Source: Styela clava (Eukaryota). From it: 64,000 nucleotides of DNA. The stretch lies in assembly GCF_964204865.1 (NCBI RefSeq), contig NC_135253.1, positions 11,284,001 through 11,348,000 of the forward strand, given 5' to 3'. Position 1 is the stretch's first letter. Each line of letters begins with the position of its first letter. A program made the translations under genes and the position numbers. Positions 1 through 59,900 of this stretch are shown piece after piece. Below the pieces are notes generated by a model that was given only the letters and a program-made list of their open reading frames with translations, ran no database searches and was not told the DNA's origin.

Positions 1-1875
1 TAACGTTGAACACAAACCTAAAACGACCTTAGGAAGGAGGCCGGCCTAGTCTACTCATGTTCTAGCAATTTTCGAAATCATATTGGTATCTGCATTGTGT
101 CAAAAACAGTAAAGAGTTCTGGATTTCAATCAGGGGGTGGAGGATAACCATAATGAACAAAGAAAATTAAGCGCAATATTATCTGAAACATGATCTCATC
201 AAACTACATTAGGCTCCATGGTCGTGAAAGTAAAATAAGAAAAAATGAGAGAGTCCGCCGAAACAAGCATTTCGACTTCAAAATACCACGGGGATGTATA
301 TTGCCATGTCCCTTTCATATAGCCTAATGTGTTGCGTGGTGTCCCATGAGGTAATTAGAATCACGAATCTAACCAAAGTGAATGTATGCATATCTCTCTT
401 CCTCGTTCTGAGCTACTTGCCCAGTTTAGCTGTTCTACGTGGGTGTCGGCGTACGTTATAGCGTAATTAAACAACATAGCGTAAGATCTCTTCATAAATA
501 ACAATTTTTCATGACACACTCTGCTTACACGCAAACGTTACTGTGGCCCGGATAGATAACAGACAGAAGGGCCAAGTTTACCTGCAGGTAGGTAGACTAG
601 GGCCCCTTATCAAAAATCGTCTTTATGCTGTGCAATCGTGGGTATTTCAATAAAAACATAGTAAAAAGATATCAGATCACTTTTTTACTGAACAATCAAA
701 ACAATTACAGAGAATTTATATATTACTCACGCAAACACTCCAAGTCAAAAAAATGTCGCCTCTTGTTAGCTAAGTTGCATTACAGCGGAAAAGTGTGTGC
801 TGTAAAATCTTTTGTGGTGTTTTGAAAAAGAAGAATTTGTTTTCATTAGCCTTATGTGTCAAAATTTTTTTGAAAGTGCAACTAGAACGTTTTGTGCCTC
901 ACGAGGAACATAGCTGCTACAAGGCGGCCCGCTGTCTGGGAGACGCGGCGCTACATCTTTACAACCAACCAATTGTGCTACTCAGTAGCCTAATGCAATT
1001 TAGTCTATCGTGGAATTACTGCATGGGGTGCACTAGAAATACTTATTAGATCTTAAACTACCGATGTTGAAGATTCAAACTTTATAAAGTCATTACAAAT
1101 TTATAAAATCACAAATTGAGCAAAAAGAGCCCTATTTGTAGACGAACATTTTCCTATATTTCAGTCGTTAGATCGATATATAACTTTTCCCTTCGATTTG
1201 CGCGATTTTATGGGATTGAAAAAAATTGGTGTGCCCACGTTTCAGTATACCTGAATTTCAATAACTTGTTCTATTCCCCCTCATCCAGCATACAAATTGA
1301 ACACTGCTGATCAAATGAATGAATAATGGTTTATATATATATGCTACTATTGAATTTATTTCGATTTTAGATCTCAAATTTAATATTATTGTAGTTGATA
1401 TTTCCTTATTCCGGGTGTGATAAAAGTCGAACAGAAGAAATCTAAAAATAAAGTTTGAGAATAACTATTGTTTTAGTAATATGTGTGCAAGAATTGAAAT
1501 GACGGGTCAATAGTTATGCACTGTTGTGAGTCTGACATGGTTTGCAAATGGATTGCTAGCATCAATTTTTGTGAATTTCCTTGTGAATATCGTTGCCATT
1601 TTGGGGAATGACTATTGTGTTTTTATGCTTCCATAAATCACGTCAAATATACAAACTTAACTCATTTGGATCTGTCTGCATTATTTATACGATTTAGATA
1701 ATAATTGATGTGGTCTTATCGGTAAGGTTACGTACTTTCCAGGGGGTTTGAAGAAATGCCCAAAGCAATAAAGAAAACAGTCGTTTCCACACTAACACGG
1801 TGCATTTCAATAAATGTTTAAACTTATAAACGGGAGTGAATCGTAGATAATTAGATTACCCTTTTAGGTATGCAT

Positions 1876-4800
1876 TTATTCATCGTATTCCGGATCCTCC
1901 TCCGAGTAATCATCTCCGTCCATCTCATCACCCTCATCATCATCGTTCATATACTCTGCAAGAAGCATCAACATGTCATTGGCAACTTCTGGTTCGTCCT
2001 CCATGAACGATTTCAACTCGCCAATCGCGTCTGCTCTGGTCTTTGCTTGTTGTTGTTGGATTGTTACAAGGGCAGCTGGAAGAAAATTTTGCAAAATGTT
2101 AACTACAGTTCCATGATTGCATAAAATAGAGCAGTTAATATGATACATTATACGTTCTTCCAGTGGCGGCGCGTCAATAGGGCCAACCGGGGCAATGCCC
2201 CGGTTGTTTTTTCGGTATAATAAAAAATATTCGAAAAATACCTCAATATCGGTTGCACAGACTGTCTACACTAGCCATATTCTCCCGACATGGTTCATTT
2301 TTCGCTCGCAAAGCCTTCGCCGAACGTCGACGCGGCGACGCCGATTTTGCCCCGGTTGCTCATTGTATATAGTATTCTCTCTTTTATCTTCCACTCGCCG
2401 CGTTTGTCTCGTTTGTTTTCTGTTTCTTTTACTAAATCATCGGGGCCGATCGGGGCTAGCCCCGAACTTATGAAGACACAATGCCGACGTTTCTTACAAC
2501 AACGTGTTGACATATTCACGCATTCCTTCTCGTTCGTTGGTTGCTTGAAGAGTTGATAGTTTCCTCGCCTTCGTTTTTGTCGCTTGTTTCGCTATTTGAA
2601 TCAGTTAGAGACCTTTAGTCCATTTGCTTTCGATTTTCCACATTCCTTTTGAGCTCCTCACTTCTTTCCGGCTTCGCATTTCTTAGCCTTAGACCTCATA
2701 ATGAATAAGGTTGATGCACTACTTCGCACTCCGTTTTCACAGCTGCTGCTGGAACAAAAATTAGAGGTACAACGTCTTGGGCCTTATCAACCAAAAATTG
2801 TTCACTGGAACAATCCCATGACGGAGGAAAGCGTCGGCGTACATTCTGCGCAGAAACTTGGTATAACAAAACACGAATGGTTGTGTTACAGCGAGGACAA
2901 AAATGCACTTTTTTGTTTTTATTGCCTACTTTTTGCTACCGCCCGTGACTCACGTTGGTGTAAATTTGGTTTTAGAGATCTTAAACATCTTTCCGAGCGT
3001 GCCAGGGATCATCAATCTTCTATGGAGCATCTGGACAATGCAGTAAAATACCGAACATTCGGAAATGTTAATATTGCAGCACAGTTGGATGAAGGACGCG
3101 CGGTTTCTATTCGTCGGCACAACCAAAACGCCGAGAAAAACCGCCATGTTCTCGGTCGATTGAGAGATGTTTTGAAGTTCATTGGTTGTCACGAGCTGTC
3201 CCTCCGTGGGCATCATGAACGGGCTGGCTCTACTAATAGAGGGGTATTTTTGGATATGATGGAATACACCGCATCCCTAGATACAGTATTGAGAGATCAT
3301 CTTGATGCCGCAATTGTTTCGAAAGGGACATCTAAGGATATCCAAAATGATTTGCTCGACTCAATGTATAACATTTATTTACAACATTTGGCTCTGGAAA
3401 TTGAGAATTGCCAGTTCCTTTAGATTCAGTCTGACGAGACACCTGAAATCACGTGCGTTTCCCAACTGGCTGTGATTTTTCGGTTTGTGAAAGATGGTAA
3501 ACCTACCGAGAGATTTCACAGCTTTGTACCAATCGTTGATCGCACGGCTTGCGGGATATCGGCTGTACTGAAAGAAGTGTTACAGCCTTACAACGCGAAG
3601 TCAAAATTGATTGCTCAAACTTATGACGGCGTGGCAGTCATGAGTGGGTTGAAACATGGTGTTCAAGTTTATATAAAAGAAGATTTTCCTCATGCGCATT
3701 TTTTACATTGTTATGCACACCAATTTAACCTCGTTATTAAAAATATGTTTCTTGATACCCCTCTCGTCCGTATATTTTTTGCAAATGTTTCGGGGTTTTC
3801 TTCATTTTTTTCCGTTTCGCCGAAGCGCTCTGACCTCCTTTGCCAGATATGTAGCCGCCGTCTCCCAGCCTGTGCACCAACACGTTGGAACTTTCAATCA
3901 CGCGTGGTGCAGGGCGTGTCCGAAATTAGGTCTGAGCTCATTGAGTGTTTCAATGGCAGAGCTCACCGGTTTGGGACGAACGCTCCGTGAGGGAGGCGGC
4001 AGGTCTAAAGCGTCTGCTAGAAGATGGTGAGTTTTCATTTTTTCTCGCCTTTTTCTCCACAATATTCTATCACGTGGATGTTTTATACGGCGCATTGCAG
4101 TCAAGGCTAATGGATGGAGCGTCTGTGCAGTCGTGTATTTCAGACTTTTTCAAAATTTGCACGTCAATTTCCCATCCATTTGTTGGCTACTGTCTCCAAA
4201 TTTTACCCCATGATAAACGTGGGTAAATTGGAAAATGAATTGCGATGTATATACACCAATCAAACTTTTTTGAACATCACATCAACTTGCGCGCTCTATG
4301 GGTTCCTCATAGATAACACTCTAGTAACTACCTTTGCGGCGTCTGCAAAATTTCTGGACATCATTTTGACGACGCCTATTTCTTCCGCCGACGCAGAGCG
4401 AACATTCAGCACGCTGAAGCGTATTAAAACGTATCTCAGAAACACCATGAAGCAAGATAGATTAAATTCCTTGGCTGTTTTATCCATTCACAGAGACGTT
4501 ATTTCTGGGATGCATGACTTTAATCAGCGCGTTATTGAGCATTTTGCTTCCAAGAAACCGCGGCGTGTTGCATATATGTTCAAGCAGTAGAAGTCTAGCA
4601 GCATATATATCTATGAGTGAGCGACGCATGTCCTTATCTTTGCATTACCTTTCCTTTCTTCATAGTAACGTTTTAAACCTTATTTTTAGGTTTTGTCTGC
4701 TTTCCCGAAGTTTCTGTTAATATGTCATTGTATTTATCTGGGTAAACATTGCCTTACCTTTTGAAAGAGGTTTCAAAATAAACTATGTCTATATTTATTA

Positions 4801-5691
4801 ATCCCTTGACTTGGACCGGTTTTAAAGACACTTTCTTATCGTTAAAAATTGTCGCTTTTGCCGATTGGTTGTTACCGATGGAATGGTTTTTATACTCCTA
4901 AAATGATGGGAGAACTTACAGCGCTCATCCTGTCCCCGTAGATGGGGGTGACTTGGTCCCGCAGTAGCTTGCCCCGGTTGTCAAAATGACCACGCGCCGC
5001 TACTGCGTTCTTCAAATATAGAGTTTGTGTCATGCGAAACGGAAATTTGCTCGAAGAAGTCTCCTAGTCAGACAATATGAGCGGTGTACTTATTATAGCT
5101 TAAATGGCCGATATTTGTTTATTTCAAGATTTAGCACACACATATTATTGCATATTGGGGGAGGTGGTAGACATGGGAAAATTTCGAGAATCAGATCTCG
5201 GAATAATGGGTTGTTCTGCACGAAATGCATTCAATGCAAAAAAAACCAAGACATCTAGAAACCCACATCTGGCGATAAGAAGTCAAATTCATAAATATCC
5301 CTTCGAAGTGAAATTTATGCATATGGTTACTTTTTAGGGCTGTGTTCAAAAGAAGGATGCAGTGAAGTAAAATTTCATCGATATATTTACCATCTTCGTC
5401 GTGTCGTCTTCTTCTCTTGGATCGATAACGCCAGCGACTAAGTCTTTCTCTCCAACGTCGAATCCTTCTGCGCCATCCACTCCGACGACCACGTTTTTTG
5501 AATCTGTACGACCTATCAATAAAATGTTACAGTGTGGAAACATCATTTAAACTTATTGTAGATGGAAGCAAAAATAGGTTTATAGAAACTGTGATTTACA
5601 CTTTGGACTGCCAAATAGAAAATAAAACCTACTGACTCTCGGCCAAGAGCATCGCCAATACAAGGACGACGAACAGAAATTTCCAATTCAT
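1876..5691 (-). CDS. Secreted Arg/Trp-rich cationic peptide precursor with acidic propiece (putative antimicrobial peptide), copy A, 126 aa
   Basis: Hand-spliced coding exons 5691-5633, 5512-5391 and 2075-1876, all GT-AG with matching phases (2, then 1). A non-coding exon 1 ends at 5758 (donor GTAAGA). Product: MNWKFLFVVLVLAMLLAESQS-YRFKKRGRRSGWRRRIRRWRERLSRWRYRSKRRRRH-DEDAALVTIQQQQAKTRADAIGELKSFMEDEPEVANDMLMLLAEYMNDDDEGDEMDGDDYSEEDPEYDE*. The same structure is conserved in copy B. Antimicrobial function is inferred. Confidence 0.85.
2161..5005 (+). mobile_element. hAT-superfamily DNA transposon (2845 bp, defective) in intron 3 of peptide gene copy A
   Basis: TIRs CAGTGGCGGCGCGT / ACGCGCCGCTACTG. 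Perfect 8-bp TSD CGTTCTTC (2153-2160, 5006-5013). The empty site is present in the paralogous copy at ~10296-10303. Confidence 0.95.
2701..4590 (+). pseudogene. Disrupted hAT transposase (ZMYM1/Tip100-like: TTF-type Zn finger, DUF4371-like region, hAT C-terminal dimerisation domain)
   Basis: Motifs WLCYSEDKNALFCFYCLLF, QSDET, YDG..VMSG, HCYAHQFNL, PTRW and PISSADAERTFSTLKRIKTYLRNTMKQDRL. In-frame TAG at 3421-3423, a frameshift near 3950 and an apparent internal deletion near 4150. Confidence 0.9.
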
Positions 5692-5822
5692 CTGTAAAAT
5701 ATCAGAAAAGTTATTAGCTTCATGCAAATACATACAAGTTTAGACAAATTGTCTTACCTTGAAAATGGCGTTGTTCTTTTCAAATAAAGAATAAAATAAT
5801 GGGTTGTCTTATGCTCATTCTG

Positions 5823-5830
5823 CTTTTATA
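5823..5830 (-). promoter_or_regulatory. TATA box of peptide gene copy A
   Basis: TATAAAAG on the minus strand ~65 bp upstream of the exon-1 donor; conserved in copy B. Confidence 0.6.
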
Positions 5831-8800
5831 GATGCCTTTACGGAGTATAAATGTTCGGCCAACGAAGTCTGATCCTGCCAATTAAACTCTTCAGATACCA
5901 TATGGTACATTTGCCTTTGAATGACAACATGGTCACGTTGTGGATTGCAAAACATTTTGAACCAATCATATGAAAGATTCCGCGTTATATAATCTAATCA
6001 ATGTCATAAAAATAGAATGTTGCTATGATGCATCTCACATTTATTTCCAAATCAGTCCCAATTGTTAAAAATATTTATTTTCCAAGTTGTCAAGTCAGTT
6101 GCGTGCATGACTATAGCTTTTTTTGCATAATTGTGACGCCGGGTTCTTGTTACATAATGTGGACGACAGACATATGTATATATAGAAACCAACCTGCTTC
6201 CAAACATCTGTCCAAATGCAACACAAATATTGTGCTACCTATTACACCCCTTTATTTCACCACAGCATTAAAAATGCTACAATAAAAATTTAACTTCGTC
6301 AATATATTCTCAATATATATAGGAAAATAAGTTCAATATATCCCGCTTGAGATATAACCTCAATTTAGCTATACGAATTATAGGCATTTGGTTAGCATGG
6401 AATTGTTCAGTCGATTGGCAGGTGTATCATAACACAGCAGTGCTGGTAACATAACACTGCTGGTACTCATCAACTAGTCTATGCCATAGAGTAGACTCTA
6501 TGTGAAAAGTGCACAGCGGCATGCAACAATAAAATTCCGACACAAGCTCTGTGATTTAGCAAATACGTGGAACGTTTCTGGGTTCGTGGGTTTCTGTTTG
6601 GCAGACAGATGAAGAAGGGGCAAGCTGTGTTTCGTGTTACTATTCCTAACTCATTGGAAACGAAGTGGATCTATAGATCGTTTTATTGTTATTTGTATTT
6701 TTCTTTTTCTAGTTGTTGTTGTAAAAAAATCGCTTTTCTTAAGGAATACTGGATCAATTGCTTTAAATATTTATGTGGTTAACGATTGTTTGGGTCTCTA
6801 GGTCATTACTTTTCTTCAATTAAAAAATATCTGCGTGCTCCATGAGTCCATGGGATTCATTTTTCACTGTGAATTTTTGTGCGATGACGTCGGCGAAAGT
6901 AGAAAATTGCGTACCTTATGCTGTTCCGCACCCTCAATGGTTGCGCTTTCGTGGTCAGTCGAAGACGGGAAATATATGGTACCGGTACTGTAAATAATTT
7001 ATACCAGTACTAATTCGTTTTGGCTTTCGTGTCCATATATTTGAGCATCGCTCATTTGCTTGAATATAAATTGATTGAATCTTGAAATTGATAACCCAAA
7101 CATCTTTAATCCTGTGATAACGATCTGAGATCGACCCTACTCGTACCCATTATGGTGAATTAGGTTATGTTAAACAAAAATATTTGTATTCTCGATTCAA
7201 ATCCCTACTGAGTTAAGTAGGCTACATTCCTTTGAAGTATATATCACTTTATGGCTCACCTACAAATTTCGTATATGTGTGCTTTCCGTCCGGTGACATG
7301 CTGTTAAGTTCAAATAAACCAAAGAGTGCCCAAAACAGTTGAGTAATTGCACCCGACATGGTGGGGAAAGGTTGGATATTGGTAATGCACGTTCCGTTCC
7401 GAACTGTAATATATGTTGAATTCGCCATAACAGACGATGAAAATAATTGATAAAAACGGACAAAAACCGATTATTGTATCAGGAGAGCAAACGAAACCTT
7501 ATTTCATACCTGATCTCATACCTGACTCACCTCACGGAATAAGCGAATAACTTCCGTTCACATAGTACATAATTTCAACATATCTAAGGGCTGTTTTGAT
7601 TACGCGAGACCAAGTCGTATAATCCAAGCTGTGCACTAAAAACCCTGAACTATTTGTAGTTGGTAATTTAGAAACTATTTCTAAGACAATTTTCACATAT
7701 GACTGGTTTTGAAAATATCTTCATTCACGCTCGGATTGATGTCGGGTATGGTTTGATAATAGTTGTATATATTGAAACGAAATATCGCGCAACCCAAGTT
7801 AGATGAAACACGGCACATACAAAAATCGACTATCAATATATATTTTTTTATCGCTTAGAACTAGTGAGCATGTATTCTTTCATTTGTGTTCATACTGGTA
7901 CTAAGGCTCACCACAGGATGCCACACCACCCACAACCCGGGCGCATAATTGGAATCAGAATGAATTTTCGTGTGATGGCCGATCGTTCGTCATGTCACGC
8001 GGTAATAAGCACGGCATATGGATGGTGACCGTACAAACTTTAGGCAATCTACGCCTGTTGCCGATTAAGCAAAAGTGTCGTGCCATATTCATTGCGGGTT
8101 TGAATTACGTAAAACACAAACCTAAAAAGACCTTAGGAAAGAGGCCGGCCTAGTCTACTCATGTTCTAGCAATTTTCGAAATCATATTCGTATCTGCATT
8201 GTGTCAAAAACAGTGAAGAGTTCTGAATATCAATCAATCAGGGGGTGGACGATAATCATAATGAACAAAGAAAATTAAGCGCAATATTATCTGAAACATG
8301 ATCTCATCATGCTACATTAGGCTCCAGGGTCGTGAAAGTAAAATAAGAAAAAAGATTAGAGAATCCGCCGAAAGAAGCATTTCGACTTCAAAATACCACG
8401 GGGATGTATATTGCCATGCCTCTTTCACATAATGTGTTGCGTTGTGTCCCATGAGGTAATTAGAATCACAAAGCCAACCTAAGTCGTGTAAGTGAATGTA
8501 TGCATATCTCTCTTCCTCGTCCTGAGCTACTTGCCCAGTTTAGCTGTTCTACGTGGATGTCGGTGTACGTTATAGCGTAATTAAACAACATAGCGTTAGA
8601 TCTCTTCATAAATAACAATTTGTCATGACACTCTGCGTATCCATTGTAATTTAAAACTTTTTTTGCTATTGCTTGCACGCAAACGTTATTGCTACCCGGG
8701 TAAATAGAAGGGCGTAATTTACCTGCTGGTATGTAGGTTAGGGCCCCTTATCACAAAAATCGTCTTCATGCAGTGCAATCGTGGGTATTTCAATAAAAAC

Positions 8801-10035
8801 ACAGTAAAAAGATAACAGAACACCTTTTTTAACACTTTTCGCACAAGCAAAACAATTACAGAGAATTTATATATTACGCACGCGAACACTCCGAGTCAAA
8901 AAAAAAAATGCCGCCTCGTGTTAATTAGCTAAGTTGCATTACAGCGGAAAAGTCTGTGCTGTAAACTCTTTTGTGGTGTTTCGAAAAAAGGAATTTGTCT
9001 TCATTAGCGTTACGTGTCAAATTTTTTTTTGAAAGTGCAACTAGAACGTTTTGTGCCTCACATAGAGGAACATAGTTGCTAAAAGTCAGCCCGCTGTCTG
9101 GGTGACGCGGCGCTACATCTTTACAACCAACCAATGGTGCTCCACAGTAGTCTATTGTAATTTAGTCTATCGTGGAATTACCGCATGTGGTGCACTAGAA
9201 TTACTTATTAGACCTTAACCTACCGATGTTGAAGATTCAAACTTTATAAAGTCATTACAAATTTATAAAATCATAAATTGAGCAAAAAGAATCCCTATTT
9301 GTAGACGAAAGTTTTCATATATTTCAGTCGTTAGATCGATATATAACTTTTCCCTTCGATTTGCGCGATTTTATGGGATTGAAAAAAATTGGTGTGCGTA
9401 CTTTTCAGTATATATAGACTACCTGAATTTCAATAACTTGTTCTATTCCCCTCACCCAGCGTACAAATTGAACACTGCTGATCAAAAGAATAAATAATGG
9501 TATATATATATGCTACTATTGAATTTATTTCGATTTTAGATCTCAAATTTAAAATTATTGTAGTTGATATTTCCTTATTCCGGGTGTGATAAAAGTCGAA
9601 CAGAAGAAATCTAAAAATAAAGTTTGAAAATACCTATTGCTTTAGTAATATCTGTGCAGGAACTGAAATGACGGGTCAATAGTTATGCACTGTTTTGAGT
9701 TTGACATGGTTTGCAAATGGATTGCTGGCATCGATTTTTGTGAATTTCCTTGTGAATATCGTTGCCATTTTGGGGAATGACCATTGTGTTTTGACTATCA
9801 CGTCAAATATACAAACTTTACTCATTTGGATCTGTCTACATTATTTATACGATTTAGATAATAATTGATGTGGTCTTATCGTTAAGGATACGTACTTTCC
9901 AGGGGGTTTGAAGAAATGCCCAAAGCAATAAAGAAAACAGTCGTTTCCACACTAACACGGTACATTTCAATAAATTGTTAAATTTATAAACGGGAGTGAA
10001 TCGTATATAATTAGATTACCATTTTAGGCATGCAT

Positions 10036-10990
10036 TTATTCATCGTATTCCGGATCCTCCTCCGAGTAATCATCTCCGTCCATCTCATCACCCTCATCAT
10101 CATCGTTCATATACTCTGCAAGAAGCATCAACATGTCATTGGCAACTTCTGGTTCGTCCTCCATGAACGATTTCAACTCGTCAATCGCGTCTTCTCTGGT
10201 CTTTGCTTGTTGTTGTTGGGTTGTTACAAGGGCAGCTGAAAGAAAATTTCGCAAAATTGTAACTACAATTTTATGAGCGCATATAATACATTATACGTTC
10301 TTCAAATATAGCATTTGTGTCATGCGAAACGGAAATTTGCTCGAAGAAGTCTTCTAGTCAGACAATATGAGTGGTGTACTTATTATAGCTTAAAATGACC
10401 GGTATTTGTTTATTTCAAGATATAGCGTACACATATATATTATTGCATATTGGGGGAGGTGGTAGACATGGAAAAATTTTGAAAATCAGATATCGAAATA
10501 ATGGGTTGTTCTGCACGAAATGCATTCAATGCGAAAAAACCAAGACATCTAGAAAACCACATCTGGCGATCAGAAGTCAAATTCATAAATATCCCTTCGA
10601 AGTGAAATTTCTGCCTATGGTTACTTTTTGGGACTGTGTTTAAAAGAAGGATTCAGTGAAGTAAAATTTCATCGATATATTTACCATCTTCATCGTGTCG
10701 TCTCCTGAATCGGAAACGCCGGCGCCAGCGACCAAATCTTCTTCTCCAACGTCGAATCCTTCTGCGCCATCCACCCCGACGACCACGTTTTTTGAATCTG
10801 TACGACCTATCAATAAAAAGTTACAATGTGGATACATCATTTAAACGTATTGCAAATGGAAGCAAAAATATGTTTATAGAAACTGTGATTTACACTTTGG
10901 ATTGGACTGCCAAATAGAAAAAAAAACTTACTGGCTCTCGGCCAAGAGCATCGCCAATACAAGGACGACGAACAGAAATTTCCAATTCAT
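10036..10990 (-). CDS. Secreted Arg/Trp-rich cationic peptide precursor with acidic propiece (putative antimicrobial peptide), copy B, 126 aa
   Basis: Coding exons 10990-10932, 10806-10685 and 10235-10036; non-coding exon 1 ends at 11057. Product: MNWKFLFVVLVLAMLLAESQS-YRFKKRGRRGGWRRRIRRWRRRFGRWRRRFRFRRRH-DEDAALVTTQQQQAKTREDAIDELKSFMEDEPEVANDMLMLLAEYMNDDDEGDEMDGDDYSEEDPEYDE*. Confidence 0.88.
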
Positions 10991-11121
10991 CTGTAAAATA
11001 TCAGAAAAGTTATTAGCTTCATGCAAATACATACAAGTTTAGACAAATTGTCTTACCTTGAAAAGAGTGTTGTTCTCTTCAAATGACGAATAAAATGATG
11101 GGTTGTCTTATGCTCATTCTG

Positions 11122-11129
11122 CTTTTATA
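11122..11129 (-). promoter_or_regulatory. TATA box of peptide gene copy B
   Basis: TATAAAAG on the minus strand at the same spacing from the exon-1 donor as in copy A. Confidence 0.6.
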
Positions 11130-11864
11130 GATGCCTTTACGGAGTATAAATGCTTGGCCAACGAATTCCGATCCTGCCAATTAAACTCTTCAGATACCAT
11201 ATGGTGCATTTGCCTTTAATTTTTTTTTATGACAACCTTAAATTATGACAACATGGTCACGTTGTGAATTGCAAAACATTTTGAACCAATCATATGAAAG
11301 ATTCGGCGTTATATAATCTAACCAATGTCATAAAAATAGAATGTTGCTGTGATGCATCTCACATTTATTTCCAAACCAGTCCCAATTGTTAAAAATGTCT
11401 ATTTTCCAAGTTGTCAAGTCAGTTGCGTGCATGACTATGGCCTTTTTTGCATAATCGTGACGCCGTGTTCTTGTTTCATAATGTGGACGATATACATATG
11501 TTATGTACATATAGAAACCAACCTGCATCCAAACATATGCCCAAATGCAACACAAATATTGTGCTACCTATTACACCCCTTTATTTTACCACAGCATTAA
11601 AATGCTACAAACAAAAACACGACCATATCGCTTCATTTATTAAGGTATAGCGAGCGAGGGCGATCTCTAAAGACAAGGAACGATAGCGCACCAGCGTTAT
11701 GGACGTTTTCCCGACCATTGACCCCGGAAAAAATTACTCTTATACTTTACTATTGCAAACTTTATGCTTATTCTGAGTGTTTTGGTGGGTTTGCGCATAT
11801 AATTGGTTTGCGTGTTTAAAACCCTAATTTTTACCAAAATTAATCAACCATGTGCCGTTTGCAG

Positions 11865-12512: not shown

Positions 12513-13414
12513 TGATATAGCTAAGTTTGGCCTTGTCTATCGCAGCATTTGCGAGATTCAATTTCGATCACTGCAACTATGGTAAAGCTTCGCAGAAGAC
12601 ATAATGACAATTAGGTCAATCAATTCACTATTATTTTCTTGAATCACAACTGAAATCTGACAAAACTCGAAACTACAAAAACGAGGCAATGTTTGCAACC
12701 ATGCTTGAATATCTGCTTGAGCGACAGAAGTGTCTGAGCGGCTGAGTGAAGAAATTGCAATTGTTACGTGTTGCGTCATTGTTGACTTATTGCTGATTGG
12801 TTATAGTTACGGATATATACAAGGAAACTAATGCTTGGGGACTTCCATAAACGCTGTTCAGCGAATTCATACAGTAAGGAAGACAAAGCGTTGCCGGTAT
12901 ATTTTAGCCAACTAAAAGGTTAATTGTTGCAATATTTCAAATCTGCTGGCGTACCACTTGAAAAGCTCCCGCGTAACACTAGTGGTACGCGTACGACAGG
13001 TTGAGAACCACAGCTCTATGCGAATAAATACAATACAAGTGCACAGCGGCATGCAACAATAAAATTCCGCCACAAGCTCTGTGATTTAGCAAATACGTGG
13101 AACGTCACGTATTTCTCAATTGTTGTGGGTTTCTGTTTGGCAGCCAGATGAAGTAGGGGCAAGCTGTATATCGTGTTACTATTCCTAACTTATTGGACCT
13201 ATATATCGTATTATTATTATGTTGTTGTTTGGGGGCTCCCGAAGCGAACCAAGATGGCGGACATCGGAATGTAATATGTGTACTAAGTTAGGGTTAGGCC
13301 ATAATTTTAGGTATAAATACCACGGGAGGCTCTTGGCTAGTCTTCGAACTGATAATAGGACTAAAATAAGGGAAATTGGAAAAAAATTATCGCCTAACCC
13401 TAACCTGTTACACA

Positions 13415-13912
13415 CAGTGGCGGCGCGTCAATAGTGCCAACCGGGGCAATGCCCCGATTGTTTTTTCGGTATAATAAAAAATATTCGAAAAATACCTCAA
13501 TATCGGTTGCACAGACTGTCTACACTAGCCATGTTCTCCCGACATGGTTCATTTTTCGCTCGCAAAGCCTTCGCCGAACGTCGACGGGGCGACGCCGATT
13601 TTGCCCCGGTTGCTCATTGTATATCGTATTCTCTCTTTTATCTTCCACTCGCCGCGTTTGTCTCGTTTGTTTTCTGTTTCTTTTACTAAATCATCGGGGC
13701 TAGCCCCGAAATTATGACGACACAATGCCGACGTTTCTTACAACAACGTGTTGACATATTCACGCATTCCTTCTCGTTCGTTGGTTGCTTGAAGAGTTGA
13801 TAGTTTCCTCGCCTTCGTTTTTGTCGCTTGTTTCGCTATTTGAATCAGTTAGAGACCTTTAGTCCATTTGCTTTCGATTTTCCACATTCCTTTTGAGCTC
13901 CTCACTTCTTTC
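13415..13912 (+). mobile_element. 5' fragment (~500 bp) of the same hAT transposon as 2161-5005
   Basis: Near-identical to 2161-2668 starting exactly at the TIR CAGTGGCGGCGCGT; no right end seen. Confidence 0.9.
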
Positions 13913-14230: not shown

Positions 14231-14684
14231 TCAATGTTTCAGCCTTTTTACCCAAATTTTGTTCATTTATTTTTCAATGTTAGTAGTAAGCTTTTTCTTA
14301 TTTTAATATCTCTTATCTTGCGTTCGTACCAATAAGATAAATCGCAGATAATATAGGCGTGAGTTCGGAGATAAAGGATAAAAGATAACAGCGGCCCAGT
14401 TTCATCCACTTATCTAAGAACTAGTTATCTTCGACCTATCTACGATTTTACGCCAGCCAGTATTACGACTTCTATTTACTACGATCTTCAACCTCAGAGC
14501 AACGATGAATTATATACCTATATAGGTATGTACGCATGAATTGTGCTTCTTCTGGTTTGACAAATGAAATAAACTCTCCCTCTCCTTCTACAGTTCTATC
14601 TGTCTATAGCTCTATTAGTGTAACTGTGCAGTGATTTCTGTCTACAAATATAAAATCAAATCACCTTCGAAAACGACGAAAAGC

Positions 14685-15884
14685 ATGTATACATATGAAC
14701 CTTTGAGAAAAGGTCCTGGATTAGACTTTCGTTCAACATTCACTTTTTCAAACACTGGGAAATCTGCTTCATCTGGGACTAAATATAGTGCTGTGTCTAT
14801 TGATATGGAACCAGAATTTCAGTATATGAATCCCTCTCATCCATGGTGGGTTACCATATGCACTGGTGCAGTCCAGTTTTTTGCATATTTTCTTTTTATA
14901 ATAACTTTGCCATTTTCAGCAATCGTTTGCTTTAAGATGGTACACCAATATGAAAGAATAGTCGTTTACAGGATTGGACATCTATTGCCACTCAAAGGGC
15001 CTGGCATTGTTCTTATTCTTCCTTGCATTGATCGGTGGAACAAAGTAGATTTACGTACCAAGGCTTTCAATGTTCCACCAACCAGAGTTTGTACTTCTGA
15101 TGGCGGATTAATTTTAATTGGTAGTGTTGTTCATTTTCGTGTGCAAAATCCTTTGCGTGCAAACAATAGTTTAAAAGATATGAATCACTCCATCAGAACA
15201 ATGGCACAATCAGCTATGTCAAAAATCCTGAGCAAAAAGCTTTTTTCAGAGGTGATGTCAAGTGGATCTCGTTACAATTATGACATTCAAACTGAGATTA
15301 ATGAAGTTGCTCGTGATTGGGGGCTCGAAATCGGAAGAGTAGAATTGTCTCAACCAGTTGCAGAAGTCTCCCCGCCTGTGCAACAAACTGGATTTCTCGA
15401 TAAATTAAAATCTGGATTCGGGGGAGGCGGTGATGTAATGGGCATGACGCAGCAGCTTTTAGGTTTTGCTGGAGCTGGTGGTTTAAACCAACAATATGCC
15501 AGTATGAATAAAGTCAGTGAGACATCTACAAATATACCAGTGGTTGATATAGAAAAAGAGGCAGGTGATCTAATCAATGCTGCTGGGAGTGTTATTGATG
15601 AAGATATGCTTTATAATGTTGATGCTGCATTTGAGATTAAACTTACTGATAATGGAAATTATTATTTTATCGACTTGAAGATTGGAGGAGGAAGTTGTGG
15701 CAAAGGTAGACTTCCTGTTGGTACACCTGACGCAACTTTGATTCTCAGCTTCAGTACGTTACATAAACTTTTGTCTGGAAAAATAGGAGCATTTTCTGCC
15801 TATAATAGTGGGAATTTAAAGTTAGAAGGTGATATCAAAACTGCAATGAGACTGGAAGAACTTGTGAATCATCTCAAAATATAA
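14685..15884 (+). CDS. STOML1: Stomatin-like protein 1 (SPFH/band-7 domain plus C-terminal SCP2 sterol-binding domain), single coding exon, 399 aa
   Basis: Membrane segment followed by YERIVVYRIGHL..KGPGIVLILPCIDRWNKVDLRTKAFNVPP. C-terminal SCP2-like PDATLILS...AYNSGNLKLEGDIKTAMRLE. First in-frame ATG at 14685; possible 5'UTR intron at 14526-14593. Confidence 0.92.
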   Translation: MYTYEPLRKGPGLDFRSTFTFSNTGKSASSGTKYSAVSIDMEPEFQYMNPSHPWWVTICTGAVQFFAYFLFIITLPFSAIVCFKMVHQYERIVVYRIGHLLPLKGPGIVLILPCIDRWNKVDLRTKAFNVPPTRVCTSDGGLILIGSVVHFRVQNPLRANNSLKDMNHSIRTMAQSAMSKILSKKLFSEVMSSGSRYNYDIQTEINEVARDWGLEIGRVELSQPVAEVSPPVQQTGFLDKLKSGFGGGGDVMGMTQQLLGFAGAGGLNQQYASMNKVSETSTNIPVVDIEKEAGDLINAAGSVIDEDMLYNVDAAFEIKLTDNGNYYFIDLKIGGGSCGKGRLPVGTPDATLILSFSTLHKLLSGKIGAFSAYNSGNLKLEGDIKTAMRLEELVNHLKI

Positions 15885-16851: not shown

Positions 16852-17622
16852 ATGGCTGACAAAGAGGAAGACAATGCGGAGTTGGATTGTACAGGAGCAA
16901 AGCATTCTGTATGGTTGGTCAAAGTTCCAAAGTATTTAGCTACTATATGGAAAGAAGCACCTGGAGGTCAACCAGTTGGAAAATTACGCATCGGAAAAAC
17001 AATGGGAAGAACTCAAGTTTCATTCAATCTTGATGAATCATTGGCAAAAGAACATCCTACAAGTAAAGATTCTGTTCCTACAGAACACAAGTTCTCTTTG
17101 CAAGGCATGGGGAACCAGAGCTTAGCTGTGTTCTCACAAATACCTGGTGTAGGCCCAGGAGGGAGCGAAAAACGAGCTATTGAGGGACGAATAGTTCAAA
17201 AAGCTGATTGTATGCCACAAGGTGGTCAAAAGTATATGAAACTCAAAATGACTCAATTTGAAGTTGCTACAAAACCAACCAGAACTGTAAAACAGCTTGA
17301 CACTGCAGTAAGAAGTGTCTATAAGCCGGTATCAAGAATACAAGAAGAAATAGCTAACGATAAACGGCAAAAAGCAGAAGGAAAGCGTATCAGAGGTTCA
17401 AAAGAACAAGTCATGGCAAAGCTTTTCGAAGCATTTGAAAAACATCAATTCTACAGTATTCAAGATTTAGGAAAAATAACAAAACAACCGATAACTTTCC
17501 TTAAAGAGATATTGCGAGAGATTGGACATTATAATTTAAAAAATCCACATAAAAATATGTGGGAATTAAAACCTGAATATAGACATCATGAAACCCCGAA
17601 AATGGATGTAGATTCTGATTAA
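16852..17622 (+). CDS. GTF2F2: General transcription factor IIF subunit 2 (RAP30), single coding exon
   Basis: VWLVKVPKYL near the N-terminus; C-terminal winged helix LFEAFEKHQFY..QDL..ITKQP..FLKEILREIG.YNLKNPHKNMWELKPEYRH. Confidence 0.97.
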   Translation: MADKEEDNAELDCTGAKHSVWLVKVPKYLATIWKEAPGGQPVGKLRIGKTMGRTQVSFNLDESLAKEHPTSKDSVPTEHKFSLQGMGNQSLAVFSQIPGVGPGGSEKRAIEGRIVQKADCMPQGGQKYMKLKMTQFEVATKPTRTVKQLDTAVRSVYKPVSRIQEEIANDKRQKAEGKRIRGSKEQVMAKLFEAFEKHQFYSIQDLGKITKQPITFLKEILREIGHYNLKNPHKNMWELKPEYRHHETPKMDVDSD

Positions 17623-45804: not shown

Positions 45805-46815
45805 GCAGTTAAATGAATACGGTAGCCTATAATATGACGTAGAAATTTATTCCACAATGACAGCGATCCCACAGTGTGCGGTATCTGGCTATTTAGTTTT
45901 CCAGTGAAGAATTAGCCACAATGTCTTTATTTATATGTAATTTATTTATTATTTAGGCTACTTATTGAACAATTCACATTGTGGATCCATTTAAAAAAAA
46001 GGAACTGGCCTATATAATTTTTGGTTTCGCTGGCCTAGTCACTTTGGTTTGGGAGAACGGAGGGGACAGGTTAGTGTAGTCAGGTTGCAGAGACTGAGAT
46101 TGATTATGAATATTTTAAATAAATAAACGATGCAAGATTTTGTTCGAGTAATGGAGTTCTCTTTGTTTTTCCTGTTTTCCTCCAAGCTATTTCAGTATTT
46201 TACACTGTTTTCAATTTAGAGCTTTCCCCCACGTTTTTCAGTATTCTCCAAATGCTAAGAGAAGTATTTGAAATCCATTTGCCAATACACAGATACACTT
46301 CACTGCCACCTAGGATCTGACCTTAAAAATCAGAAAATGATGAAATGCGTTAACTTCCAGACATCATTCAATTCGCTGTCACGATCTATTTCGAGTAATT
46401 AGAGCAACGAGGACTGAGTGCCATGTTAAATCATTTTGATCAGAATTTTTTTTATCATTTGAGAAACCTGTCATATGTCTTTTATATACTTGAATCTCTA
46501 CTATCACTGTATCAAGTTAAGTCTCTCTGAGTGTTTGTAGAGACTTATATTTTGACTCAAGTCCTTTTCTAAAACTACAGGCAGCCTTGAATTTAATAAA
46601 AAATGTAAAGTGTGGTCAAGCTGTCAAGTCAATGGCTCAAGTTTACCAAAACACCTATTCTAGTATATTTTGTACTTATTGTCTAGTGCTGTAGTGGCTG
46701 TGTTATAATTTCATCAATACTGCAATAAATCACATTGTGCAATTACAAAGCTTTCTTTAATTCTAATATTCATTATTAAATGTAAGTTTGTATAATATTG
46801 AATGAGAAGAATTCA

Positions 46816-47274
46816 ATGAAGACTAAATTGCTTGCTGTGTTTGCGGGGTGCCTGGGTGCGGCAGCATCTGTCACAGGAAAACTGGGAATGAATGGAGACC
46901 ATATAAACAAATTATGTCTGGCTATTACCTTGATGTTCCAGAGTATTGCGCATGATGACCCTCCACCATTAACAGATGAAGAAGTATATATGACATTTAT
47001 AGCGTCAGTTGTTACAAGAGGAATATTTTTGATATTAACATTTATATTGAATGCCACTATGTGGTCTTTATTTGTGGAATCAATGCAAGGACTCAATTCT
47101 GGTGAAGCTGTGGTATTAAATACTGGTGCAAATATTTTATTTTCTGCATTATTAGGAAGGCTTGTATTTAATGAAATGTTTGGAATGTTGTGGGGAGTTG
47201 GGGCATCACTTATATTATGTGGGATGTCCTTTTTGCATTCAACAACTCCACAAGAAGGTCTCAAAAATGGTTGA
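46816..47274 (+). CDS. TMEM42: Transmembrane protein 42 (EamA/DMT-like), copy 1, single exon
   Basis: AGCLGAAASVTGKLG, NATMWSLF, AVVLNTGANILFSALLGRLVFNE...LWGVGASLILCG; four hydrophobic helices; first ATG at 46816. Confidence 0.85.
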   Translation: MKTKLLAVFAGCLGAAASVTGKLGMNGDHINKLCLAITLMFQSIAHDDPPPLTDEEVYMTFIASVVTRGIFLILTFILNATMWSLFVESMQGLNSGEAVVLNTGANILFSALLGRLVFNEMFGMLWGVGASLILCGMSFLHSTTPQEGLKNG

Positions 47275-47950
47275 CGATACATCGGTATCTGTCACATGCT
47301 ATTTATATTTAAGTATTGCTAAATAATAAGTGGGTGAACTCACTTGAACATTACTTTGTTTTATAATATATTTTTGGCCTGAGGGATTATTCTGTCATAA
47401 AATATTCTGCTCATTCTGTTTGATGGTCCAAACTCAAATTCATGATAATGCAACAAATCTTTTGAGTCTGAATTTGGCATTTTTTTCACTGGAATCTCAT
47501 TTTCGAACTATCCAAGTTGGAGTCAGAATTTCAATGATGATGAGAGAACTCAATTTTTTTACGAAAACTCGAAAAGCATAAAGTTTACTACTGTAAGTGT
47601 TTTTAATAACATTCTAATAAAGATTGCTTGCATATGTTGAAGTTTTTGTTCTAAAAATGTGATTTCCTTGAAATTCAAAGCTATAGTTGAAGTCAAATTT
47701 TCTTATACCTTGGGCTTAGAGTCGGCTTCACAGCCTTGGTTTCCAACAATGCTCATATAAATATGCCATAAAAAGTGAAATATAAGTGTTTCAAAAATTA
47801 CCGTAGTTGTAGTATCCTGTTTGTTTTTTTAAACAAGATCTATGCGACTTTCTTATATTGTGGTTGTAACTTGGCCAAACTAAAATGAATATTGTGATCA
47901 ATATCTTTTAAAATTAGGTTCTGAGTACGCCTGTAATGTGAAGTATAGTT

Positions 47951-49944: not shown

Positions 49945-50068
49945 TAGTGGCTGTGTTATAATTTCATCAATACTGCAATAAATCACATTGTGCAATTACA
50001 AAGCTTTCTTTAATCCTAATATTCATTATTAAATGTAAGTTTGTATAATATTGAATGAGAAGAATTCA

Positions 50069-50527
50069 ATGAAGAATAGATTGCTTGCTGTGTTTGCGGG
50101 GTGCCTGGGTGCAGCAGCATCTGTCACAGGAAAACTGGGAATGAATGGAGACCATATAAACAAATTGTGTCTGGCTATTACCTTGATGTTCCAGAGTATT
50201 GCGCATGATGACCCTCCACCATTAACAGATGAAGAAGTATATATGACATTTATAGCGTCAGTTGTTACAAGAGGAATATTTTTGATATTAACATTTATAT
50301 TGAATGCCACTATGTGCTCTTTATTTGTGGAATCAATGCAAGGACTCAATTCCGGTGAAGCTGTGGTATTAAATACTGGTGCAAATATTTTATTTTCTGC
50401 ATTATTAGGAAGGCTTGTATTTAATGAAATGTTTGGAATGTTGTGGGGAGTTGGGGCATCACTTATATTATGTGGGATGTCTTTTTTGCATTCAACAACT
50501 CCACAAGAAGGTCTCAAAAATGGTTGA
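50069..50527 (+). CDS. TMEM42: Transmembrane protein 42, copy 2
   Basis: Three amino-acid differences from copy 1 (T>N, K>R, W>C). Confidence 0.83.
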   Translation: MKNRLLAVFAGCLGAAASVTGKLGMNGDHINKLCLAITLMFQSIAHDDPPPLTDEEVYMTFIASVVTRGIFLILTFILNATMCSLFVESMQGLNSGEAVVLNTGANILFSALLGRLVFNEMFGMLWGVGASLILCGMSFLHSTTPQEGLKNG

Positions 50528-51245
50528 CGATACACCGGTATCTGTCACATACTATTTATATTCAAGTATTGCTAAATAATAAGTGGGTGAACTCGCTTGA
50601 ACATTACTTTGTTTTATAATATATTTTTGGCCTAAGGGATTATTCTGTTCATTCTGTTTGATGGTCCAGACTCAAATTTATGATAATGCAACAAATCTTT
50701 AGAGTCTGAATTTGGCATTTTTTTCACTGGAATCTCATTTTCGAACTATCCAAGTTGGAGTCAGAATTTCAGACTTTCAATGATGATGAAAGAACTCAAT
50801 TTTTTTATGAAAACTTGAAAAGCAATAAGTTTACTACTGTAAGTGTTTTTAATAACATTCTAATAAAAATTGCTTGCATATGTTGAAGTTTTTGTTATAA
50901 AAATGTGATTTCCTTGAAATTCAAAGCTATAGTTGAAGTCAAATTTTCTTATACCTTGGGCTTAGAGTCGACTTCACAGCCTTGGTTTCCAATAATGCTC
51001 ATATAAATATGCCATAAAAAGTAAAATATAAGTGTTTCAAAAATTACCGTAGTTGTAGTATCCTGTTTTTTTTTTTTAAGCAAGATCTATGCGACTTTCT
51101 TATATTGTGGTTGTAAAGTATAATATACGACATATATTCTATTACCAGTATTCGAATGTATTCTGTCCTTTAGTATTTCTCACATGTGTAGCGAAAATAA
51201 TAATTTCTTATTTTTCATACTTTTATAGTTGTATTGTTTAATTAT

Positions 51246-57788: not shown

Positions 57789-59900
57789 CTAATAGAATTC
57801 CAATAAATGTCTCTTAAGCTTGGATCTAAATTCGGACATCGTTGTCGAGCTTTTAATACTATTAGGCAATGGGTTCCATACTTTAGGTCTAAAGAATGTA
57901 ATCGATTCTTGTGCTATTGATGTTCTAACATACGGAACAAAAAATCTGTCGTGACTTCTGCTATTTTGGGTATTATTATTCGCGAATACGCGATTAAAGC
58001 AACTAGGGAGTTGACCAGTAGAAGATAAAAACATCAATGTGCAAATCTCTAATGTTAGTAAATCTTCAACACGTAGTAGTTTTTCACTTTTGAACAAATC
58101 CGCAACACTATCTCTCCGACCCCTATCAAAAGTCATTCTCAAGAACTGATTACAGGCACTTTGAATTTTAATTGTAATACCTTTTTGACGATGCATCCAA
58201 GTGTTTATACAATATCGTATATATTAAGGTTTTTATTGGTTTTTGAAATAGCTTCGAGGGCTGCCCTTGTTTTGGATAGTACCAATTGTGACTGATATTT
58301 CCATGACAATTTGTCATCGAGTGAAACACCCAGGAAACGAATTTGGTTTACTCTTTGAATGCACTTGGACTGTAGAATTAGCTCATCGTTTAAAATGAGT
58401 AGTTTTTGTCCAGATGCACTGAAAATCATGTACTTGGTCTTTTCCGCATTTTCTGTTAGTAGTTAGCCATGGTTGAATATTAGTTAGGTCAGCATTAGCT
58501 TTTTCAAAAAAGTTTTGGTAAATTTTTCCCCTGTAAAAAAGTGGTGGTGTCATCAGCAAATAGAATAGCATCAGAGTTCTTGAGTGATTCAGGGAAGTCA
58601 TTAATCATAATTAAGAAAAATATAAGCCCCATAAGCGAACCTTGAGGGGCCCCAATTGTTAAGTTGCAGTATTTACTTGAAGAGTGCCCGTCATAAACTA
58701 ACACTTGTATGCGATCAGACAGGTAATTGCGGAACCATGAAAGGCAGTGGCCTCTAACAGCTATGTGGTAGAGTTTTGAAAGCAAGATATGATGGTCAAT
58801 GCAATCAAAAGCTTTTGATAAGTCAAGAAATAGTCCGAGAGTATAGTGGCCTTTTTCAAATCCATCCAGTATTTTACTTGTAAGCAGAGACGTGGCCGGC
58901 GAAGTGGTATGTCCCTTGCGAAAACCAAATTGTTGATGGTAGAAAAAACTCTTTTGTTCTAAAAAGTTAACTAGTCTATTGTACATGACTTTTTCTAAAA
59001 TCGTTGAAAAAGACGGCAGTAAGCTAATCGGTCTATAGTTTTTGACATTTTTTAATGTCTCCGCCTTTATGAAGCGGTACTACTTTAGCGATTCTAAATT
59101 CATCAATAAATTGTTAAATTAAATATTAAGAAGATGAACCAGAGAGAGCATACAGTTCCACGGCATTGCTCTAACCTTAATGGGGATTCCATCAAGCCCA
59201 CAGCTGGTTTTAGGTCTAAAAGCTCGAATAATAGCTTGTATTTCTGTGGCTGTTACCGGTGATAGAAACATTGAAGAGTTACTTGATTTGCCCATGTATT
59301 TTATGAAGTTACCGTCATAATCATTAGTGAATTTATCAGACATTCGCTGTCTTATCGTAGAAAAATGTTCATTGAAATGATCAGCTATCAATACAGGATC
59401 ACACGTTTCTCTATTTCCCACAACAAATACTTTTGACAGTTTAGATTTGCATCGACCTAGCAGGGTATTCATTGTTTGCCACGATTTTTTAAGATCGTTT
59501 TTAGTTTTAGTTTTACTCAAGAGCGATCTGTAGTAAGAATGCTTTTTGGCCGATAACATTTTTTTATAAGTTTTCTTGATTTCCAAGTATTCATTCCTAG
59601 AATATTGCAATTTATTGATGAGAGTTGAATTTTACAGTTTCTGTTTTTTCTTATGAAGTTTTATTAATTCGTTAATCAAATTGTTAGTTTTCTTGATCAA
59701 AATCTGAGGAAAACAGCGATTAAAAACTGGCATAACATGGCAAGAATATTTTCTAAGGGCATCGTTCGGGTCTGATTCTTCATACACTACAGAGAAATCG
59801 ATGCATTCTATTGACGTCCTAAATTTAGTCATATTGGTCGGATTAAATGATCGAGAAAGACTGTTTTTATTTATTTTAATAACAATTTTTTGTTACTATG
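57789..59900 (-). mobile_element. Decayed, 5'-truncated non-LTR retrotransposon (L2/CR1-group LINE ORF2, reverse transcriptase)
   Basis: Frameshifted ORF pieces with YRPISLLP, QFGFRKGHTT, FLDLSKAFDCIDH, GAPQGS, LFADDT, FLGVSLDDKLSWK and WNPLPNSIK. Confidence 0.9.

Follow-up and report, generated by a model that had tools for sequence, protein, structure and literature searches.

Two tandem genes of Styela clava encode a putative secreted, arginine- and tryptophan-rich peptide with a neutralising acidic propiece: candidate host-defence precursors

Does the ascidian Styela clava, a classic source of haemocyte antimicrobial peptides, possess a further family of such effectors that resembles none of those already described? 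The question is raised by a stretch of 64,000 nucleotides of its genome (hereafter the window; NCBI RefSeq assembly GCF_964204865.1, contig NC_135253.1, positions 11,284,001 to 11,348,000 of the forward strand). An initial annotation, made from these letters, had proposed that it contains a hidden tandem pair of secreted cationic peptide precursors, each with an acidic propiece. We refer to the two genes as A (LOC144422150) and B (LOC120326849), and number all positions from the first letter of the window. Our analysis describes them as a tandem pair of apparently young, Styela-restricted genes that would encode a secreted pre-pro-peptide. We give a probability of about 0.5 to the reading that they represent a family of cationic, charge-neutralised host-defence precursors that is new, restricted to its lineage and convergent with the myticalins of mussels and with the styelins and clavanins of S. 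clava.

The two genes are collinear, both on the minus strand, and comprise four exons each, with GT..AG at all introns. In gene B, the non-coding exon 1 (11057..11205, donor at 11057) is followed by exon 2 with the start codon and the signal peptide (10932..10990), exon 3 with the cationic module (10685..10806) and exon 4 (9911..10235). The coding part of the latter (10036-10235) ends with TAA and is prolonged by a 3' untranslated region reaching at least 9911. The limit at 11205 corresponds to the reach of a contig from the public run X1, described below, and exon 2 was placed from both the sequence and this contig. The gene A counterparts are exon 1 (5758..5906, non-coding, donor at 5758), exon 2 (5633..5691, read from the sequence, with the signal peptide and the ATG at 5691), exon 3 (5391..5512, encoding the cationic module and HDED, the first residues of the acidic tail) and exon 4 (1876..2075, with 65 in-frame codons of the acidic tail and the stop codon TAA). 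The 5' limit of its exon 1 was taken by analogy from gene B, at an offset of 5299, and not from RNA. In both genes, intron 1 is 66 nt long and ends directly before the ATG, exon 2 is 59 nt long and ends in phase 2, and exon 3 is 122 nt long and ends in phase 1.

As the initial annotation had stated, these phases (2, then 1) join only in the arginine-rich frame, and in-frame translation reproduced its exons, phases and peptides exactly for both genes. Each precursor has 126 residues and shows the proposed layout of signal, hyper-cationic block and acidic tail, each coding exon corresponding to one module. Neither gene is hidden, as RefSeq already contains both of them as uncharacterized proteins. 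XP_077968122.1 (isoform X2 of LOC144422150) is identical to the gene A model letter for letter over 126 residues, its residues 62-126 being the product of exon 4, and XP_039249137.1 (LOC120326849) is identical to the gene B model over the same length. A second RefSeq isoform of gene A, X1, has 140 residues and reads through intron 1. A literature search found no paper citing either locus name.

Gene B was found to be partly present in 12 public runs by a search with sampled words. Eight of these runs, belonging to four studies, contain 6-30% of its sampled words, as the exons alone would give, and seven of the eight (three studies) are labelled as S. clava. The eighth, X6, is labelled as a different organism (organism B) and contains 8% of the words; this signal may come from an orthologue in a close relative or from a mixed sample. 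The four remaining runs, from one DNA-like sample, contain 70-74%. Contigs of four runs were aligned to positions 9800-11500 (gene B, 1701 letters) only, and the junctions of gene A were judged from A-type letters in these contigs. Contigs inform on presence and joints, not on levels, starts or ends.

Run X1 yielded one 657-nt contig made of the pieces 9911-10235, 10685-10804, 10930-10990 and 11057-11205, with no mismatch across exons 3 and 4, including the whole of 9911-10235. Its joints are 10235/10685, 10804/10930, which is equivalent to 10806/10932 when both sides are shifted by two letters (+2), and 10990/11057. They have CT..AC ends on the plus strand, that is, GT..AG on the gene strand. 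The two gene B junctions proposed for an RNA check, 10932/10806 and 10685/10235, are thus both present, and the joint 10990/11057 bears out the non-coding first exon. The DNA run X9 spans the whole 9800-11500 stretch and shows none of these joints, and whole-assembly searches found no intron-less copy in the genome; the joined form is therefore RNA. In run X8, one contig crosses from exon 3 to exon 4 and resembles gene A, as shown by the A letters at positions 10181 and 10193 and by A's CGT, Tyr codon and CGA-TCC where B has CGC-CGG-CGT-TTC. Its joint is the equivalent of the junction predicted between exons 3 and 4 of gene A. A-type exon 4 is also present in run X5. With A-type contigs in X8 and X5 and a B contig in X1, both genes are therefore expressed; they are transcribed and spliced, and a 2845-bp transposon lying in intron 3 of gene A (see below) is no block to splicing. 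Two other X8 contigs are peculiar. The first, of low depth, joins exon 1 straight to exon 3 (10804/11055), skipping the signal exon, and was given no weight. The second matches exon 1 (11104-11177) and runs upstream of 11177 into 53 non-matching letters; a structural variant, a mis-assembly or an alternative exon located upstream could explain them.

The initial annotation had also assigned a TATA box to the two genes. The motif TATAAAAG is indeed found at 5830-5823 in gene A and at 11129-11122 in gene B, but a promoter role was not confirmed: the X1 contig reaches 11205, at least 75 nt farther upstream, which places the motif inside the transcript. Within this contig, exon 1 of gene B contains two short upstream open reading frames (ORFs). 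The leader would carry both if transcription starts upstream of the motif, and none if the start lies some 30 nt downstream of it.

The first 21 residues of the precursors fit a signal peptide by rule, with MNWK as n-region, a 13-residue hydrophobic core and AESQS as c-region. Small residues are found at -3 and -1, with candidate cleavage after AES or SQS, and the precursor is predicted to be secreted. The 35-residue peptide that follows (residues 22-56) had been credited with a charge of about +20; we computed a net charge of +20 for A (18 Arg, 3 Lys and 1 Glu) and of +22 for B (20 Arg and 2 Lys). It contains 51-57% arginine and no cysteine, and its core is devoid of proline. In both copies, this core consists of three W-x3-hydrophobic-x2 heptads: WRRRIRR, WRERLSR and WRYRSKR in A; WRRRIRR, WRRRFGR and WRRRFRF in B. 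By a post hoc test, three tryptophans at period 7 were obtained in 67-73 of 20000 shuffles (~0.35%). A hydrophobic a/d register was obtained in 962 of 20000 shuffles for B (5%) and in 17% for A, and the hydrophobic moment of the peptide at 100 degrees (0.51-0.58) lies in the top 8% of shuffles. With p values of ~0.05-0.17 for the a/d register and ~0.08 for the moment, the heptad and moment statistics are suggestive only. They are consistent with a helix carrying a narrow aromatic ridge inside a guanidinium sheath.

The arginine codons vary from heptad to heptad, which indicates that the period is kept at the protein level. Tandem Repeats Finder detected no DNA-level tandem repeat under the heptads, and such a repeat was rejected as their source. 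A derivation of the cationic exon from a frame-shifted duplication of the acidic exon was also rejected, as the local alignment of exon 3 with exon 4 DNA was no better than those of dinucleotide shuffles (102/500 for B and 415/500 for A).

The acidic propiece begins with HDED and covers residues 57-126 (70 residues). Its charge is -23 in A and -25 in B, and the pro-protein has a net charge of -3 in both copies. A conserved, helical-hairpin-like half precedes a disordered poly-Asp/Glu end. AlphaFold2, with only the two sequences as input, predicted with low confidence (mean pLDDT of 60.5) that the cationic core and the tail form helices at residues 33-87 and 89-107, followed by a disordered acidic end. 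A complex prediction for the cationic peptide and the acidic tail gave no answer (score 0.01) and is uninformative either way. The cationic block ends with a basic run, RRRR-HDED in A and FRRR-HDED in B, in which RRRR/RRR is a candidate processing site.

The two genes belong to two duplicated units. Unit 1, with gene A, spans 1..6273 and may start left of the window; unit 2, with gene B, spans 8107..11602, and the non-coding divergence is ~5%. The units form collinear direct repeats of 92-96% identity, spaced by 8104-8169 bp on the 3' side of the transposon and by 5294-5329 bp on its 5' side. This transposon, located in intron 3 of gene A (2161..5005, plus strand), is a degenerate hAT element identified by its target-site duplication, its terminal inverted repeats and its domain matches. 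The 8-bp target duplication GAAGAACG is found at 2153-2160 and 5006-5013, and the terminal inverted repeats are 13 bp long (CAGTAGCGGCGCG). The transposase frame is broken into at least three plus-strand ORFs, with matches to DUF4371 and Dimer_Tnp_hAT. Gene B harbors the empty site, a single GAAGAACG at about 10296-10303. The comparison indicates that the insertion into gene A is younger than the duplication. The first 500 bp of the element are found again at 13415-13912, where a second copy begins; as the two are 98-99% identical, this hAT family was recently active.

The divergence between A and B differs strongly from one part of the genes to another. Compared with flanks and introns (~0.05 per site), the cationic exon diverges faster (0.086 per site and two in-frame 6-nt indels), with 8 non-synonymous and 2 synonymous differences in a codon alignment and a dN/dS of ~1.2. 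The signal and tail exons diverge more slowly. The tail exon shows 0.015 changes per site, that is, three changes, all non-synonymous, and the signal exon with intron 1 a single difference in 125 nt. Intron 1 itself (5692-5757 and 10991-11056; 66 nt) is identical in the two genes, the difference being at one synonymous site of the signal exon; this identity could be due to gene conversion or to an element conserved for regulation or splicing. Two of the three changes in the tail (Ala to Glu and Gly to Asp) make that of B more negative, and it is in B that the peptide gained +2. Peptide and propiece thus show an apparent charge compensation, in a single comparison. A conserved signal and propiece combined with a fast-changing mature peptide is the hallmark given for myticalins (PMC5577615), and both this pattern and the layout are those of charge-neutralised cationic host-defence precursors.

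Charge and conservation could also be those of a secreted polycation with no immune function. Such a protein would bind, package or cross-link polyanions, for instance extracellular nucleic acid or the sulfated glycans found in granules or tunic, or would self-coacervate as a diblock polyampholyte to form structural or adhesive material. The extreme, protamine-like charge density and its near-exact balance by the tail agree with this role. Furthermore, the acidic half has twice the length of the cationic part and is more conserved than neutral sequence, which exceeds the need for a simple spacer. Pfam returned only sub-threshold compositional matches for the precursor, among which are the Arg-rich nucleic-acid-binding arms of viral capsids (TT_ORF1 and Gemini_coat). 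However, proteins with structural or adhesive roles tend to be larger and repetitive and to be expressed at very high levels, and the cationic part is what differs most between the copies, as in arms-race effectors. The regular tryptophan heptads also suggest an activity at membrane interfaces over pure charge. We consider this explanation unlikely, while keeping it among the alternatives.

How isolated are these two genes? Searches of the whole S. clava assembly, in six frames and at the DNA level, with exon 4, exon 3, and exon 2 plus intron 1 as queries (E up to 10) returned only A and B, apart from one chance match at E 0.5. The family has two members in this genome, and it shows no detectable paralogy with the styelin and clavanin genes that S. 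clava also has. Exon 4, the full-length record and the cationic region were each compared with 5.8 billion proteins in a word-indexed search and matched no other protein, and an exhaustive phmmer search with exon 4, covering 1.84 billion representatives, gave no homologue that we accepted. PDB sequences gave only chance matches (E ~1) and no solved structure, and the ESM Atlas returned the query's own sequence (pLDDT 0.52) and no usable look-alike. The earlier statement that the peptides match no described peptide or protein family thus holds for the protein sets, Pfam and PDB. We use Styela-restricted in this sense, for absence from the protein collections searched.

Two long repeat proteins were weakly matched by exon 4 in the phmmer search. 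In one of them, a NACHT-HEAT protein, several consecutive HEAT repeats align with residues 73-107 of the precursor at 31-37% identity, the E-value being due to the summing of the repeats. AlphaFold2 predicts, with low confidence, that residues 73-107 form a helix-turn-helix broken at Pro89. No Pfam HEAT family matched the precursor at E up to 10, and only a single hairpin-like unit is found. Homology with HEAT proteins was therefore rejected, the resemblance being one of structural pattern only.

This ordered, HEAT-repeat-like pattern in the N-terminal half of the tail speaks for a prohormone-like precursor, in which the arginine block would consist mainly of convertase sites and be degraded, the functional products being the conserved acidic/helical-hairpin piece or very short fragments. 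The KKR, RR, RRR and RRRR sites are many and dense in residues 22-56, and, of the coding parts, the tail exon has changed least (0.015 vs ~0.05 per site in non-coding DNA). On the other hand, amidation signals and repeated conserved small peptides are missing, and Pfam and protein-set searches found no related neuropeptide family. Because its first 21 residues and its tryptophan period are conserved and the 6-nt indels are in frame, the cationic block is better read as a constrained protein than as a series of cleavage sites. A prohormone thus seems quite improbable.

Could the two genes be transcribed and spliced without having a settled function? A young gene pair of this kind would be a low-complexity ORF persisting since a recent duplication. 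It would account for the lack of homologues in the sets of 5.8 billion and 1.84 billion proteins, for the two genome copies, for the low-complexity composition and for an exon 3 dN/dS near 1; modest contig depths and a transposon tolerated in an intron also go in this direction. However, both ORFs are intact after ~5% neutral divergence, with their indels in frame, and the non-synonymous divergence of the tail (3 changes in 160 sites) is under the neutral level. Two of these three changes add acidic charge precisely in the copy with the +2 peptide. Splice sites and signal peptide are perfectly kept, and transcripts occur in runs of three studies. We judge this explanation improbable.

If the products are host-defence peptides, they differ from those already known in the same species. 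Styelins, clavanins and clavaspirin, from S. clava haemocytes, are linear alpha-helical cationic peptides; according to cDNA papers of 1997, their prepropeptides comprise a signal peptide and, at the C-terminal end, a polyanionic extension. They are Phe-, His- or Lys-rich, moderately charged and C-amidated, whereas the A and B peptides are 51-57% arginine with charges of +20 to +22, and the 70-residue propiece is much longer than theirs. Membership in the styelins or clavanins was rejected, as the own-genome searches returned only A and B and there is no Gly amidation signal. More generally, Arg/Trp-rich mature parts are present in several families of charge-neutralised propeptides. In sea-urchin centrocins and strongylocins, tachyplesins of horseshoe crabs and arminins of Hydra, an anionic prodomain offsets the charge, as in the layout of A and B. 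Hydra arminins carry the acidic part before the cationic part, and tachyplesins are disulfide-bonded hairpins, unlike the cysteine-free peptide of A and B. No sequence relation to these families was found in the protein and PDB searches. The principle is that the anionic prodomain protects the producing cell (PMC10608444).

The nearest described analogues are the myticalins and modiocalins of mussels, which are linear cationic antimicrobial peptides (PMC5577615, PMC12294457). The mature myticalins have a pI above 11 and are followed by an anionic extension of 35-75 residues (PMC5577615). Like A and B, their precursors combine a signal, a hypervariable linear Arg-rich peptide, a cleavage site made of basic residues and a C-terminal extension that is anionic and rich in Asp/Glu. 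The gene plan is also similar: exon 1 is non-coding and its intron ends directly before the ATG, and the last intron interrupts the anionic extension in phase 1, a few residues after its beginning. In both cases, the genes form a tandem or multigene family with a conserved signal and tail and a fast mature part. Conversely, myticalins are mollusc peptides and A and B chordate ones, without sequence similarity. The signal peptides differ (consensus MKG..LLLL in myticalins, MNWKFLFVV in A and B). In the three-exon genes of myticalins, a single exon carries both signal and mature peptide, whereas A and B have four exons, with an extra phase-2 intron between these modules. Myticalins are made of Pro/Arg/Tyr repeats, whereas the core of A and B is made of Arg/Trp heptads without proline. 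Finally, myticalins have a proven activity and are expressed in gills, while A and B are known from sequence and transcripts. Membership in the mussel myticalins, which the layout and a low G+C content had suggested, was rejected, given that the organism is S. clava, that signal and exon number differ and that no mussel protein appeared in the searches. The resemblance appears convergent as far as is visible.

We therefore return to the host-defence precursor as the favoured reading. The acidic propiece would neutralise the cationic peptide during synthesis and granule storage; a proprotein convertase would cut at the RRRR/RRR-HDED boundary; and the freed polycation would act as a host-defence effector against microbes by membrane binding and entry, by polyanion binding, or by both. 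The neutralisation of cationic antimicrobial peptides by anionic prodomains is established (PMC10608444). Two features of host-defence precursors are present in A and B, a strongly cationic amphipathic region and a propiece of opposite charge after a basic site. Secretion, processing, mature form and antimicrobial role are what we infer from the sequence.

Several points weigh against this reading. Composition and layout are the sole basis for the suggested antimicrobial, cell-penetrating or nucleic-acid-binding function. The many di- and tetrabasic sites could lead convertases to chop the cationic block into small fragments, and the helical model is of low confidence, as its mean pLDDT indicates. 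The evolutionary argument comes from one paralogue pair, in which a dN/dS of ~1.2 obtained from 10 changes is not significant, and the low divergence of exon 4 and of exon 2 with intron 1 could be due to gene conversion. Neither A nor B has a Gly amidation signal before the propiece, unlike styelins and clavanins. The two short upstream ORFs would be part of the transcript if it starts upstream of the TATA-like motif. The neighbouring genes are housekeeping genes and not an immune cluster. No kappaB-like motif was found in the conserved upstream regions of A and B. In the whole window there are six such sites vs 3.4 expected, the nearest at 12837; kappaB-like regulation was dropped from consideration.

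A bolder version of the host-defence reading can be put forward tentatively. The pair would be a Styela-specific, possibly de novo hyper-cationic family in which a structured acidic propiece, its charge following that of the peptide, keeps the latter inert until release, a new helical Arg/Trp class of antimicrobial or cell-penetrating peptides, and a gene plan convergent with that of myticalins. In this de novo version, killing may proceed via cell entry and condensation of nucleic acid, not via pores. S. clava being the source of styelins and clavanins, a further unrelated family, if real, would widen the set of innate effectors in the chordate lineage. With their unusual arginine density, the peptides would also be a natural template from which salt-tolerant antimicrobial or cell-penetrating peptides could be designed. 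The pair illustrates, cleanly and on a small scale, a precursor with one exon per module, in which fast change is confined to the mature-peptide exon and charge is apparently compensated. The parallel with the gene plan of mollusc myticalins bears on the repeated origin of such precursors. If the peptide is not antimicrobial, the finding is that of two annotated orphan genes.

The neighbours of the pair in the window are a STOML1-like Band_7+SCP2 ORF, TFIIF-beta, CIA30, DUF846 and a retroelement reverse transcriptase. Adjoining gene B, a plus-strand ORF of 417 residues (14631-15884) combines Band_7/SPFH and SCP2 domains, as in stomatin-like protein 1, and a single plus-strand ORF of 256 residues at 16852-17622 encodes TFIIF-beta. 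Both are apparently intron-less, which is unusual in an animal genome and raises the question of whether they are retrogenes. Farther away, pairs of ORFs of equal length (168 aa on the minus strand and 158 aa on the plus strand) are found at 46776-47282 and 50029-50535. Their spacing of 3253 bp points to a further tandem duplication in this region; the 158-aa plus-strand ORF has only a weak EamA-like match. A minus-strand RVT_1 ORF at 58504-58986 is a fragment of a retroelement.

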